The notes under the pieces are model-generated. The model had not been told where the DNA came from. It made no database searches and worked only from the letters and a program-made list of their open reading frames with translations. Positions 11,833 through 17,437 of a stretch of DNA of 64,000 bases are shown one piece after another. Numbering within the stretch: position 1 is the first letter of the stretch; each line of letters starts with the position of its first letter. Location: the sequence record NC_020851.1. One strand, given 5' to 3'. Position numbers and translations under genes: made by a program.

Positions 11833-11862
11833 GTGAGTGGTGTTCCCTTGTTTACCTCTATA

Positions 11863-12786
11863 TTATAAGGCATACAGAGCACTCTCCAAGGGGTTCTGTG
11901 ACAGTTCCTCATCTGTCATACGACCTCTTGCTATTTCTGTATAGTGTTCACTAAGATCTATACCAACAAAGTTTCTATATTGTCTTATGGCAGAGACTCC
12001 AGTGGTGCCACTACCACAAAATGGGTCAAGGACAATAGAATTGGCAGGAGAATAGATCTTAATAAGATATTCCATTAATGATACTGGTTTAACTGTAGGA
12101 TGATCATTATTTTCCCCCTTTTCTTTCTTTGTTGCTCTTGGTGCATAAAAATATTTTTGCTCAGAAGGTTGTACTTCACCAATAATATTCATTGGATAAC
12201 GTCCTGCAGCATTACCACCGGTAGTTTCTTTTGGTATTGGTTCATTTGTAGATGGATCAATCCAATATTCTTCTTTAGTTTCAATATTACATGCCTTATT
12301 CTGAATACCACCAAATACTCTACGTTTCTCACCACCTTTGATCCATCCTGTTGGTGGTTTACCATCCCATGGCACTCTGCTATTCTCAATATCAATTAGA
12401 CCACAACCCCATTTCTCATGATTCTCTTTGAGAGAACCTTCGTAAGGTTTCTGTCCTACTACAATCGGTTCGTGTGCTGGTTTCAATCTATTATATTTTG
12501 CCATCTTTGTGGTTGTCATCCACATAATCTGATCTTTAATAACAAACCCGGCATCCTCTACATTACATGCCAATCGATGATATAATTCCGGAGAACAAAA
12601 TGCAAGACAAAAAGCACCTGGTCGCAAAGTTCTATAAACCTCACGCCAGATGTCTACATCGGGAACAGAATGATCCCAATGATCCATACCCATACCATAT
12701 GGGGGATCAGTGATACATGAATGGAAATAGTTCTCCCCATAAGTGGAGAGAACTTCTTTACAATTACCAGTTATAATTGAGTACAT
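11863..12786 (-). CDS. N4-C/N6-A DNA methyltransferase (beta class)
   Basis: Catalytic CITDPPYG near the N-terminus, HPTVKP, and SAM-binding VLDPFCGSGTTG near the C-terminus; probable start MYSIITGNC at 12786 overlaps the upstream gene. Confidence 0.9.
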   Translation of the reverse strand: MYSIITGNCKEVLSTYGENYFHSCITDPPYGMGMDHWDHSVPDVDIWREVYRTLRPGAFCLAFCSPELYHRLACNVEDAGFVIKDQIMWMTTTKMAKYNRLKPAHEPIVVGQKPYEGSLKENHEKWGCGLIDIENSRVPWDGKPPTGWIKGGEKRRVFGGIQNKACNIETKEEYWIDPSTNEPIPKETTGGNAAGRYPMNIIGEVQPSEQKYFYAPRATKKEKGENNDHPTVKPVSLMEYLIKIYSPANSIVLDPFCGSGTTGVSAIRQYRNFVGIDLSEHYTEIARGRMTDEELSQNPLESALYAL

Positions 12787-13294
12787 TAGATTCGCACTGT
12801 TGACGTTCAAAGTGTTTGAAGTAGTCTTTTTTACCCGCACCATTTTGAACATACATGTTGCGGATATAAAAATCAAAACCACGGGAATCTTCCTGCCATT
12901 CTTCATCCATTTGATGAAGTTTCAGAACTGCATTCAATTCTTCAGTTAGATTATTGAACTGTTGACGTTTCTTGGTAGAAACTACATCATCGGCAAAGAA
13001 GATTGTTGTTTGATTATAACGATTACTGCTAAAGATGTAAACAACACCTCCTTTCGGCAATCCACCATTATAAGTGGGAAAAGTTTGCTTAGAAGACTTA
13101 CACTCAATGTCAACGGTTTTACCGTTTTCAAGGAAAACTCGGAAGTCTGGTGAGTTGTGGGTTCCGTTAGGTTGAGCAATATATCGGAATCCGTGCTTAA
13201 TCAACAGATCCTCTACCTGCTGTTCATGAAATGGATTGTCCTGAGAATTAGACTTGTAAGGGAGGAGCAGAACCTCTTGCCAGAATTTTTTCAT
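12764..13294 (-). CDS. PD-(D/E)XK endonuclease, probable type II restriction enzyme
   Basis: SPDFRV...VDIECKSSK motif; translationally coupled to the MTase. Confidence 0.7.
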   Translation of the reverse strand: MKKFWQEVLLLPYKSNSQDNPFHEQQVEDLLIKHGFRYIAQPNGTHNSPDFRVFLENGKTVDIECKSSKQTFPTYNGGLPKGGVVYIFSSNRYNQTTIFFADDVVSTKKRQQFNNLTEELNAVLKLHQMDEEWQEDSRGFDFYIRNMYVQNGAGKKDYFKHFERQQCESNVLNYNW

Positions 13295-13407
13295 GTTGAA
13301 CTCGGACTTGATTGCCCGTTGTTTGTTTACCTTGTTATTATAACCCCATATTGCCCGGAGGTCAAGGAGTTTTGGAAGAATTGACCCGGTTTGCCGACTG
13401 GCACACT

Positions 13408-14683: not shown

Positions 14684-15139
14684 TCATGACACTTTACTAA
14701 CTGGCACAGAAAGAGTTGCTTCAACTTCTTTAATGTTCAAACCACAGAGTTGATTGTAAACTCGATTGACAATGAGATCGGTGGCTCTCTTAGCACGACT
14801 GGTCTCATACCAAATAGTCGTGCAACCATCATAAGTCTCAACACGAATACGGTAGGTCTTGGTGACAGTCATGGGTGGTTTCCCTTGTATGAATGTATTA
14901 TAGAGCATCCTGAGAGGGTTTCAGGATGCTGTGTGACACTTGCCTGACTGTTACATCGCAAGAGATGCGGCACAATCAGAGATTTCTTTCATTCCTTCCT
15001 TGTCAGTCTCTATGTAGAGAAGACCGCATTCATCAATCCACCACCCTTTGATGTAGGCAGTATCTATGTGCATGGTCACGTCGTTGTTGTTTTTGTTGCC
15101 GATTCCACTTGTGAATCCGATACCTTTTGAGTAACTCAT
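14684..15139 (-). other. Two small hypothetical ORFs (14684-about 14872 and 14951-15139)
   Basis: Short co-oriented ORFs separated by an early-promoter hairpin. Confidence 0.5.
14895..14940 (-). promoter_or_regulatory. Early promoter containing a stem-loop (near-identical copy at about 15578-15625)
   Basis: TATAAT -10, 10-bp stem AGCATCCTGA/TCAGGATGCT, and an upstream GTGTCACA element. Confidence 0.7.
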
Positions 15140-15555: not shown

Positions 15556-15622
15556 GGTGCCTTTGCTTGATTACCTCTATATTATAGAGCATCCTGAGAG
15601 GGTTTCAAGATGCTGTGTGCCA

Positions 15623-16087
15623 CTAAAAGAACTGTTCTACTCCCTGTGCTTCACCGAAACTGTAATCATATTTTAGAGCATCGTAGCAAATGTAGTGCGG
15701 GTGATCGACAGATACCCCCAGACGTTGACACATTTCAGCATGATTGTCTTCCATAAGCTCAACGGCATAGAGCATGTTGTTGATGATGTGATCATAATCG
15801 TGATATTCAATCAGTTTATCACGCAGAGCAATCATAAAATTACCAGAACCAGCAGAATTATCAAGAAATGTAGACTCTGGGTTCTTCAGTCTTTCTTCTG
15901 GCAAACTATTTACCATTTGACGACATACTTCAATCGGTGTGAATACTTCTTGAGTAACTTTGATGCGTTCATCAGATCTCTCAATCGAAGATCCCACCTC
16001 CTGATTGTGTTTGTTTTTGGTATTCTTCGATGATTTCACCTTTTGAGACGTGGTTTCTTCCATTTGTGTTTGCACCAATTCTAACAA
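15623..16087 (-). CDS. SAM-binding half of a gamma-class amino-methyltransferase
   Basis: QEVFTP (motif X), FLDNSAGSGNF (motif I), LYAVEL (II), CYDAL (III); no NPPY. Confidence 0.75.
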   Translation of the reverse strand: MLELVQTQMEETTSQKVKSSKNTKNKHNQEVGSSIERSDERIKVTQEVFTPIEVCRQMVNSLPEERLKNPESTFLDNSAGSGNFMIALRDKLIEYHDYDHIINNMLYAVELMEDNHAEMCQRLGVSVDHPHYICYDALKYDYSFGEAQGVEQFF

Positions 16088-17360
16088 GTTCTTCCTCCAA
16101 TGATATCAAAGTTTCTACTACATTTTCATTCTTTGCCTGTATAAAGAAATGATCAAGTTGCTCACCTTTCTTAGGCAAATACTTCTCAAACTTAGACCTA
16201 ATCATTCTACCAGCATTGCCAGAACGAATAATAACAAGATCTACCCGCACTTTACCAGTCACGACATCCTTATAATCAAGGAAATCAAAGTCTGGGTGAT
16301 TAGTAATAATCTCAATTTTCTGCCTATGATTATCACCAATACGCCACTCTTGAATAGCAGCATGAATACCAACAGGGAAAGTGCCCTTCTCACAGTCAAC
16401 ATCACTCACACACTCAAGATATGGATTACGTTTGATAATCTTGTTCTGACTACCATTCTTTCTCAAAGAGATAGGCACAATCTGAAGAATCATACCATCA
16501 TCTTTCAGTGTTTCAGAGGACTTTGCCAGAAAATCTATAGCAAGATTGCCACCATTACCGTAAGGATAGTTACCAATAACTACATCAAACTTTTTCTTCA
16601 TATCAAAAAACTCTTCTTCGGTAATAAGATTGATGTCATCAAATTTATTCCCCAACAGTTCTTTACATCCATAGAAATACTCATAGTCTTTTTCAGTATA
16701 TATGTTACTGAAACCTTGCTGAACAAGGTAGTCACAGAACCGACCATAAGCATCCTTTGGAATATAAATCATAGCATCTTTCGGCAAATGTTGCAACTGA
16801 TCGCACATATCATATACTGCAAAACGTTGTGGGATGCGAAACATATCCTCCTCACGTTTCTTTGCCTTCTTCTGCTCTATGCTAGGACTAATGCCAAACA
16901 TCTTCTCAAAGTTATAGTAATAATCATTCAATTTCTGAATCTCATTACCAAGAATAAAGAGTGCTGTGTCAAGATCCTTAATATTAGCATTAGATACTAG
17001 CTCTGGAGATCCACCATAAGGATTTTTAATAAAACCATATTTTCGCATAACTTCCCTAATCTCATGGTCTTTAAGATCTGGATGCACATCCCAAGAATCA
17101 TGAAATATAGGTTTGTCTGGACATTTGGAATAATCACCATCAGAGAATCGACTCATACATTCACCTACAACCCTTTTTCCATTATCTCTAGCTGGGTCAG
17201 TTTGACCAATATAAAAACAAAAGTCCCTCAAACCAAGAGCAATTAGTTCAATCCAACTTTCAAATTGGTGACAATAGATTCGATTCTTTTTCTCAGTCAT
17301 AGTCACATCAGAATAAAAAGGTTCATTCCCACGAATTACATCAACCAGTGCGTTAGACAT
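15981..17360 (-). CDS. Methyltransferase catalytic half plus TRD, with an N-terminal GIY-YIG-like region
   Basis: FDVVIGNYPY (motif IV variant), LKDDGMILQIVP (VI), GTFP (VIII); N-terminal FCFYIGQT. Confidence 0.65.
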   Translation of the reverse strand: MSNALVDVIRGNEPFYSDVTMTEKKNRIYCHQFESWIELIALGLRDFCFYIGQTDPARDNGKRVVGECMSRFSDGDYSKCPDKPIFHDSWDVHPDLKDHEIREVMRKYGFIKNPYGGSPELVSNANIKDLDTALFILGNEIQKLNDYYYNFEKMFGISPSIEQKKAKKREEDMFRIPQRFAVYDMCDQLQHLPKDAMIYIPKDAYGRFCDYLVQQGFSNIYTEKDYEYFYGCKELLGNKFDDINLITEEEFFDMKKKFDVVIGNYPYGNGGNLAIDFLAKSSETLKDDGMILQIVPISLRKNGSQNKIIKRNPYLECVSDVDCEKGTFPVGIHAAIQEWRIGDNHRQKIEIITNHPDFDFLDYKDVVTGKVRVDLVIIRSGNAGRMIRSKFEKYLPKKGEQLDHFFIQAKNENVVETLISLEEELVRIGANTNGRNHVSKGEIIEEYQKQTQSGGGIFD

Positions 17361-17437
17361 TACAAAATTTCTTTCTACAATTATACAATAAAAAAGACCC
17401 TGTAAGGGTCAGTGTGACACTTCTCAAACTGTCCCAA

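Follow-up and report, generated by a model that had tools for sequence, protein, structure and literature searches.

How two overlapping genes that both carry methyltransferase motifs are to be understood, as one enzyme in two parts, as one gene that has been broken or as two independent proteins, is the question raised by nt 15623–17360 of the window analysed here, a 64,000-nt stretch of sequence record NC_020851.1 which corresponds to Synechococcus phage S-SKS1 (HQ633071, ~99.9% identity). Both open reading frames (ORFs) lie on the minus strand. The upstream one, here called the large ORF (SWZG_00215, nt 15981–17360), codes for 459 aa from an ATG and, according to the ORF list, the GenBank record, phrog_5172 and an AlphaFold2 (AF2) model, comprises an N-terminal domain, a helical linker, a complete gamma-class methyltransferase and a target recognition domain (TRD). 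The downstream one, here called the small ORF (SWZG_00214, nt 15623–16063), codes for 146 aa from an ATG at nt 16063, its frame being open up to a TTG at nt 16087 (154 aa), and corresponds to a stand-alone S-adenosylmethionine (AdoMet)-binding half. The answer we favour, with a probability of roughly 0.6, gives the small protein the part of an AdoMet-binding subunit acting in trans, together with the catalytic/TRD module that the adjacent upstream gene encodes.

The first-pass annotation of this DNA had described the small ORF as the AdoMet-binding half only, and this description holds well, with motifs X and I–III as the only methyltransferase motifs present and the chain ending where strand beta4 begins. 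Motif X (EVFTP, residues 47–51, nt 15935–15949, minus strand) and motif I (FLDNSAGSGNF, that is D-x-SxGxG, residues 74–84, nt 15836–15868, minus strand) are invariant in the family alignments, as are a V-E-L following beta2 and a D-A-L following beta3. Judged by motif, AdoMet would be contacted by D76, which closes beta1, by the SxGxG loop, by E110, which follows beta2, and by the D-A-L of motif III. These invariant residues match the AdoMet-binding residues of CamA, which holds S-adenosylhomocysteine by means of three acidic residues and an SxGxG loop (PMC8187626), and the profile of the small-protein family aligns to CamA residues 28–83, covering motifs X and I, ILDISCGCGNFL. In addition, the small protein shares 35–42% identity with the first ~125 residues of four standard-order enzymes (P0161, P0188, P0214 and P0234) and stops exactly at the start of their FDVVVGNPPY strand, i.e. 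at beta4/motif IV. Since the identity with complete enzymes ends at their beta4/motif IV, the small protein is, on sequence grounds, a bona fide gamma-class N6-adenine methyltransferase N-half cut at beta4. The target of the methyltransferase is probably N6-adenine in DNA.

In the Pfam scan, the N6_Mtase profile matched residues 45–114 of the small protein just below its cut-off (E 4.6e-4, 20.0 bits vs 20.4 bits), and PHROG assigned the protein to phrog_4376 (E 1.4e-75), whose function is recorded as unknown. The family is large: clustering at 90% identity leaves more than 2095 clusters, most of them of 133–135 aa, and its cyanophage members are 60–70% identical to each other.

The gene order was then compared across 80 IMG/VR loci collected via the small gene, seven of which had too little upstream sequence, leaving 73 informative loci. 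A same-strand ORF with a motif IV was found upstream of the small gene in all 73. It was directly adjacent in 63 of them, its stop codon falling between −49 and +8 nt relative to the small protein's conserved start, and separated from the small gene by a single ORF of 174–204 aa in the remaining 10. The same order, catalytic/TRD module first, occurs in P-SSM2, P-SSM5, S-CAM7 and Bellamy. Both the reversed order of the two halves, already pointed out for S-SKS1 by the first-pass annotation, and the co-occurrence of the pair in other cyanophages, which it had proposed to check, are thus found at every informative locus (73/73). This conserved pairing suggests an enzyme built from two proteins.

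In some lineages the ORF between the methyltransferase and the small gene belongs to phrog_7683 (187–200 aa, function unknown), as at L014:2454-3017 (Bellamy gp87) and L013:4479-5081 (ACG-2014f US37_52), with equivalents in L021, L063, L065 and L066; at least four of the 10 intervening ORFs are phrog_7683-like. A D…(Q/E)xK-like pattern could be seen by eye in this ORF, and no profile supports a PD-(D/E)xK nuclease.

The partners encoded upstream of the small gene fall into four classes. The first (17 loci) consists of the catalytic half only, exemplified by PSSM2_036 (193 aa) and the proteins P0008–P0016 (204–216 aa, ~60% identical to the catalytic half of S-SKS1), with motif IV no more than ~25 residues from the N-terminus; the second (15) has a short N-half; the third (18) is of the S-SKS1 type, with an N-terminal domain and an N-half; the fourth (13) is made of ORFs of ~1020–1180 aa. 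The motif sets of the two proteins are strictly complementary in the 17 loci whose partner is free of an N-half, while the large ORF of S-SKS1 keeps its own diverged motifs X and I–III. Among the 55 partners that do have an N-half, none carries the canonical (D/E)PxxGxGx(F/Y/L) loop. As a control, 80 loci of the small-free proteins nearest to the catalytic half of the large protein (a 278-aa jumbo-phage type) were inspected: the small gene was found within 3 kb in none (0/80), and EPxxGxGxF was present in 75 of 79. Conservation of the small protein does not differ between partner classes. On the small-protein tree the partner classes are clustered (19 changes vs 45.6 with shuffled labels), and the class free of an N-half needs at least two origins.

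A role as trans-acting subunit is nearly forced for the N-half-free partners, because these have no AdoMet-binding region of any kind. For S-SKS1 itself we infer the same role because the small protein is equally conserved there, the loop of its partner is decayed and the motif-I acid of the partner is missing. The locus would then represent a type of two-gene methyltransferase module that is common among marine cyanophages; its second gene would be translated from the ATG at nt 16063, inside the end of the first gene, so that translational coupling is possible. The small protein would bind AdoMet and would dock onto the upstream protein's catalytic half, its beta1 lying beside beta4 of the partner; once docked, it would supply the methyl donor in trans to the N-x-P-Y site, the large protein providing catalysis and DNA recognition. 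Directly observed are the domain content, the synteny, the decayed or missing AdoMet half of the partners and the occurrence of fused forms (see below); for this scheme we infer the physical association of the two proteins, the need for both of them, the DNA-adenine target and the fit of the small protein beside the resident N-half of S-SKS1.

The large protein of S-SKS1 is where this reading meets its main difficulty. PHROG places it in phrog_5172 (E 1.6e-94, function unknown), and Pfam Eco57I (PF07669) matches residues 241–274 with E 1.2e-4 and 22.6 bits, below the 25.3-bit cut-off; in the six-frame search the Eco57I match scored 20.9 bits and was counted as exceeding 25.3 bits once other matches nearby in that frame were taken together with it. 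Residues 162–301 align to the N-terminal part of the methyltransferase profiles phrog_3689 and phrog_9133, in the latter case over the same profile region that is covered by the small protein. The AF2 model (predicted local distance difference test score, pLDDT, 77) displays an N-terminal domain (~25–125), long helices, a seven-strand Rossmann domain, from beta1 at 198–200 through beta7 at 334–341, and a C-terminal domain. With VIA-align, residues 175–456 superpose on M.TaqI 21–413 (Z 15.0, root-mean-square deviation 3.7 Å, 251 residues), across both the catalytic domain and the TRD; CamA gave Z 13.7 and KsgA Z 15.2, the last on the catalytic domain only, where KsgA-type rRNA enzymes score as well as DNA enzymes. 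A sequence search of the PDB with the large-protein profile returned chance matches only.

According to the model, the large protein is a structurally complete M.TaqI-like two-domain methyltransferase in the order X, I–III, IV–VIII, TRD. Its catalytic Rossmann domain (residues 175–345, nt 16326–16838, minus strand), delimited by AF2, VIA-align and PHROG, holds motifs X and I–III of its own in addition to IV–VIII, and is followed by a C-terminal TRD-like domain (residues 346–451, nt 16008–16325, minus strand), recognised through the VIA alignment to M.TaqI/CamA, in which NTNGRNHVSKGE is conserved. The motifs quoted earlier for this ORF are all in place (YIGQT at residues 50–54, IYIPKDAYGRF at 198–208, NYPY at 264–267); the idea that it is merely the complementary, bare catalytic half has to be given up, given these motifs X and I–III and the M.TaqI match.

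It follows that the large ORF might be a self-sufficient M.TaqI-like enzyme, the small protein being an accessory (a regulator, an AdoMet sensor or a stabiliser) or dispensable in S-SKS1 and needed only with the N-half-free partners. Besides the complete fold, the non-canonical motif I (IYIPKDAYGRF, residues 198–208, nt 16737–16769, minus strand) speaks for this possibility. Indeed, the functional motif I of M.TaqI is AxAxG, and AdoMet is bound by that enzyme with a normal dissociation constant (PMC8187626). The xxAxG of the large ORF resembles this loop, minus the motif-I acidic residue, and P-x-D-A-x-G-x-F is conserved across the S-SKS1-type class, as is the N-half within the S-SKS1-type clade. 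A single chain with two N-halves and one catalytic half also exists (P0241, see below), and the S-CAM7 partner, which has a canonical loop, still has a small gene. On the contrary, the resident motif I departs from an acidic residue followed by (S/F)xGxG, in that I200 replaces the D/E at the end of beta1 and GxG is absent, only xxAxG being left, and orthologues differ in the residue at the acidic positions of motifs II and III (E, D, N or H). Moreover, the equal conservation of the small protein across partner classes suggests one common role, and in the 17 N-half-free loci that role must be complementation. On balance, we regard self-sufficiency of the large protein as unlikely, while giving it serious weight.

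Several of these observations, and a few others, weigh against the small protein acting as the trans-acting subunit in S-SKS1. In the structural model, the site on the beta4 side is filled by the large protein's own beta1–beta3, so that docking would need either their displacement or another interface. The large protein may bind AdoMet itself, considering its TaqI-like xxAxG and the strong conservation of its N-half in the clade. A pairwise comparison of the small protein with the large protein's own N-half revealed no detectable similarity, and the methyltransferase subfamily with which the small protein groups is not the one to which the catalytic half of the large protein belongs. In S-CAM7 the loop of the partner is canonical (YDPAMGGGQY), yet the small gene lies downstream of it. 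Finally, the loci were sampled through the small gene, so the synteny is partly a matter of ascertainment, which the small-free control corrects only in part. For S-SKS1 the possible outcomes are that the resident half is displaced, that the resident half is the working site with the small protein as an accessory, or that both bind the cofactor.

Regarding the origin of the pair, a recent tandem duplication (N1C1-N2C2 giving n1C1 + N2) was also considered; it is weakened by the lack of similarity between the small protein and the large N-half and by the match of the small protein to a different subfamily.

The way the same two parts are joined in other proteins was explored by searching 1.84 billion representatives with the small-family profile, which yielded 2065 matches, and by sorting the best 150. 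Among these best 150 matches, 107 are of 200 aa or less and without motif IV; in 15 the small-like half is followed directly by motif IV in the standard order, as in P0161, where it precedes FDVVVGNPPY; and two are permuted single chains, P0154, recognised by its motif pattern, and P0189, recognised by eye. P0154, which was found on a phage-like contig in two sources, begins with MFNIIVGNPPY and matches the Eco57I profile (positions 75–156) at residues 2–64 and the N6_Mtase profile (positions 20–118) at residues 271–373. Three natural arrangements are therefore observed: N- and C-half fused in this order, C- and N-half fused, and a C gene followed by an N gene.

Two further metagenomic single chains, P0241 (444 aa) and P0259 (302 aa), contain two AdoMet-binding halves in tandem. 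In P0241 a single catalytic half comes after the two, each of which has a good motif I; this makes it the fused counterpart of the content of the S-SKS1 pair.

The abundance of the small protein as a stand-alone family, made evident by those 107 representatives, could also mean that it acts independently of the upstream enzyme, for example by sequestering AdoMet or as a decoy against host Type I, IIG or ISP methyltransferases (anti-restriction), the two genes merely sharing a hypervariable island; the island is indeed variable and contains helicases and nuclease-like ORFs. Such independence appears quite improbable when set against the strict position of the gene, directly downstream of its partner, on the same strand and usually overlapping the partner's stop codon, against the decay of the partners' AdoMet loops and against the existence of single-chain fusions; a lone half-Rossmann sheet, besides, is unlikely to be stable.

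A broader version of the trans-subunit reading can be put forward tentatively, at somewhat less than even odds. The 133–146-aa protein would be a universal and exchangeable AdoMet subunit for a modular cyanophage family whose members extend from catalytic/TRD halves alone up to T5orf172-helicase-methyltransferase fusions of 1100 aa; since the cofactor site would come from a separate protein, the partners' own halves would have degenerated or disappeared; and the family would preserve the stages of a circular permutation (standard, two-gene and permuted fusion) by way of a split-gene intermediate.

The largest partners are represented by eight ORFs of ~1040–1180 aa located directly 5' of the small gene on contigs of uncultured cyanophages (L023:1700-5002, L024:1700-5035, L025:633-3830, L027:1661-5023, L067:1873-4995, L069:991-4188, L070:1771-4995 and L082:1457-5005). 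In six of the eight long ORFs scanned with Pfam, a superfamily 2 (SF2) helicase (ResIII/DEAD) precedes the Eco57I methyltransferase/TRD part; at the N-terminus, L023 and L069 match T5orf172 with scores that exceed the Pfam cut-off, and L025 shows a weak MUG113 match. Two other loci are worth recording. At L005:4495-5508 (ACG-2014f Syn7803C24_53), a 337-aa homologue of the large ORF bears the C-terminal TRD-like module twice, the hidden Markov model of the catalytic half matching residues 66–242 and 245–338. At L015:1-2417 (Synechococcus phage MA01), a gap of 580 nt separates the small gene, whose frame is open for 248 codons, from a preceding ORF that exceeds 1070 aa and bears the annotation 'type II restriction-modification restriction subunit'.

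The junction between the two genes invites a different explanation, namely that they are one circularly permuted gene, either interrupted by a frameshift (through sequencing error or as a pseudogene) or fused by programmed +1 frameshifting. The frame of the small ORF is in fact +1 relative to that of the large ORF, and a single set of nucleotides encodes both …EEYQK449, where the conserved part of the large protein ends, and KNKHN, where that of the small protein begins; permuted fused forms also exist elsewhere, as said above, and the S-SKS1 clade is devoid of the canonical small-gene start codon. In most relatives this is an ATG placed 2–5 codons ahead of KNKHN, the M-x-KNKHN start being absent in the S-SKS1 clade. 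An in-frame ATG at nt 16063 is, on the other hand, conserved in the S-SKS1 clade and in S-SKS1-like contigs, where it falls inside the NTNGRN motif of the large protein. As it is conserved in close relatives, this ATG is the likelier start of the small gene, giving the 146-aa product; a TTG at nt 16087, with GGAGG 6 nt upstream, is a possible alternative. The GTG at nt 15997, given in GenBank as the start of SWZG_00214, removes the family-invariant KNKHN…G-S, and that record probably needs correcting.

With the ATG start the dual-coding overlap extends over nt 15981–16063 (83 nt, minus strand), in which the junction translations read QKQTQSGGGIFD-stop for the tail of the large ORF and …KNTKNKHNQEVGSSIE for the N-terminus of the small ORF in the +1 frame. 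The conservation of the large-protein tail QTQSGGGIFD stems solely from its overlap with the region that encodes the conserved N-terminus of the small protein. The overlap of about 100 bp reported by the first-pass annotation thus exists, and amounts to 107 nt if translation starts from the TTG, but shrinks to 83 nt with the likelier ATG. From that overlap it had been argued that the locus is not a simple frameshift. The argument itself is invalid, a frameshift within any overlap being able to fuse the frames; the conclusion stands on other grounds, the two genes being separate in all relatives.

Indeed, separate ORFs were found in every cyanophage locus and isolate examined, most with their own ATG 2–5 codons before KNKHN, and close relatives yielded no fused form. 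The spacing of the genes differs elsewhere, from a 20-nt overlap in P-SSM2 to an 8-nt gap in S-CAM7, the latter also at odds with a single gene. A frameshift or pseudogene was accordingly rejected. A programmed +1 frameshift is unlikely as well, because no slippery site could be recognised by inspection and the in-frame ATG at nt 16063 is conserved. Taken as a whole, the notion of a single broken or frameshifted gene is barely credible.

Motif IV of the large ORF, NYPY (residues 264–267, nt 16560–16571, minus strand, located by alignment), departs from (N/D/S)PP(Y/F/W) and retains the N, the second P and the aromatic residue. The departure had been taken as a hint of a non-standard modification. 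Among orthologous partners, however, the second position varies (P, Y, F, S), motif IV being NPPY in most, NYPY in the S-SKS1 clade, and NPPF, NFPY, NFPF, NSPF or NSPY in others. N-(L/I)-P-Y is carried by KsgA/Erm enzymes. Rare motif-IV variants such as NLPY are also listed in a recent classification. Because of the variation among orthologues and of the NLPY-type variants in the literature, NYPY is rejected as a sign of novel chemistry; judging from these alignments, it is a lineage variant.

The N-terminal domain of the large ORF (residues 1–155, nt 16896–17360, minus strand) is present in 18 of 18 S-SKS1-type partner ORFs and shows conserved RIY, YIGxT, R..DxDYSK and GSPE stretches, the conserved residues being I28-Y29, Y50-x-G52-x-T54, R71, D76-Y77-S78 and S118-x-E120. 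These possibly represent a stretched GIY-YIG/T5orf172 signature, which we treat as a lead and not as a finding, and T5orf172 domains do occupy the equivalent position in the related large fusions L023 and L069. An Atlas lead for the domain had a score of 0.79. The Pfam scan of 12 members of the domain gave no match at E ≤1, PF01541, PF10544 and PF13455 included; PHROG and NCBIfam scans gave no match, and Foldseek with the domain model (pLDDT 74) found nothing significant. With VIA the best Z was 3.7, and Slx1 (Z 3.3 and 3.2) and HIGLE (Z 3.2), over residues 22–149, were tied with unrelated folds. In hhalign, the comparison with T5orf172-positive N-termini paired IY, (K/Y)(I/V)GxT and R(F/I)D with E 0.043 and a probability of 1.2%. 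Given the absence of a Pfam match and these VIA and hhalign scores, the GIY-YIG-like label that the domain had received is left unconfirmed, and the same applies to a T5orf172 label.

As for the boundaries of the pair, consensus scanning found upstream a terminator-like hairpin with a T run (nt 17396–17410, minus strand), and downstream a promoter-like TTGAAA-16-TATAAT (nt 15581–15608, minus strand), which would serve the next gene; both are pattern matches only. A 45-nt intergenic repeat occurs at nt 14896–14940 and 15580–15624 (96% identical), the second copy right after the small-gene stop codon and the first one gene beyond, with a partial copy at nt 17412–17432; the repeat combines a hairpin with the promoter-like TTGAAA-16-TATAAT on the minus strand. 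About 3 kb from the pair lies a second and unrelated methyltransferase gene, SWZG_00205 (GenBank 'DNA methylase', ~nt 11860–13400 together with its neighbour). Searching the GenBank record of the S-SKS1 genome revealed one Eco57I-type module and one small gene, with no further copies.

If the small protein is indeed a trans-acting AdoMet subunit, the Rossmann fold of an amino-methyltransferase would itself be cut at beta4, with the cofactor half being a separate and abundant phage protein (>2000 clusters at 90% identity). This would give a function to phrog_4376, a widespread cyanophage family now annotated as hypothetical, and would account for the truncated-looking methyltransferase genes of cyanophages and for their decayed AdoMet loops. 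It would also offer a natural system in which fragment complementation and the evolutionary path to motif permutation can be studied, and would draw attention to Type ISP-like nuclease/helicase/methyltransferase fusions in ocean phages. In the literature, no paper on this cyanophage gene pair was found.

Among known systems, M.TaqI and CamA are close in structure, as large-protein residues 175–456 superpose on their catalytic domain and TRD and motifs X and I of the small protein align to CamA. They are monomeric single chains with one AdoMet half, whereas S-SKS1 has a second, canonical half as a separate protein, a resident half without the motif-I acid, NYPY as motif IV and an additional N-terminal domain of 150 aa. 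With regard to gene order, alpha, beta and gamma classes of permuted amino-methyltransferases were reportedly defined by Malone in 1995 and Bujnicki in 2002. The beta-class order (IV–VIII, TRD, X, I–III) is the order of the cyanophage genes and, within single chains of gamma-type sequence, of P0154 and P0189. Classical beta enzymes, however, belong to the N6_N4_Mtase family, whereas the cyanophage parts are Eco57I/N6_Mtase and, in the loci examined, separate polypeptides.

A split into two subunits has a natural precedent in M.AquI, a C5-cytosine methyltransferase whose alpha and beta subunits together reconstitute activity (PMC5944983). M.AquI and engineered split methyltransferases share with S-SKS1 the presence of two adjacent genes that jointly carry the full motif set. 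In M.AquI the cut separates the catalytic core from the TRD, whereas the S-SKS1 pair belongs to the gamma-class amino-methyltransferases and has its cut at beta4, between motifs III and IV; its catalytic part is encoded first, and its large subunit keeps a diverged copy of the small-subunit half.

Type ISP enzymes are built in the order nuclease, helicase, gamma-methyltransferase and TRD (PMC4666363, PMC2790903), and their nuclease is of the Mrr family. They are paralleled by the relatives of the large ORF in which T5orf172, an SF2 helicase, an Eco57I methyltransferase and a TRD follow each other, the putative nuclease being different; the same three components, T5orf172, helicase and methyltransferase, make up the dnmA-yeeB-yeeC triad (PMC9973331). 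The large ORF of S-SKS1 differs from Type ISP in having no helicase module and an N-terminal domain that is not demonstrably a nuclease, while Type ISP has no separate AdoMet subunit. For the same reason, the type IIG-like designation first proposed for the locus does not suit S-SKS1; helicase-bearing fusions, of the Type ISP/IIG kind and with a nuclease-like part, are confined to relatives. Split methyltransferases, motif permutation classes, the Type ISP architecture and the dnmA-yeeB-yeeC triad are thus already known; what appears to be new in the cyanophage pair is a cut inside the gamma-class Rossmann fold, a stand-alone AdoMet half that accompanies many partner architectures and the systematic decay of the partners' loops.

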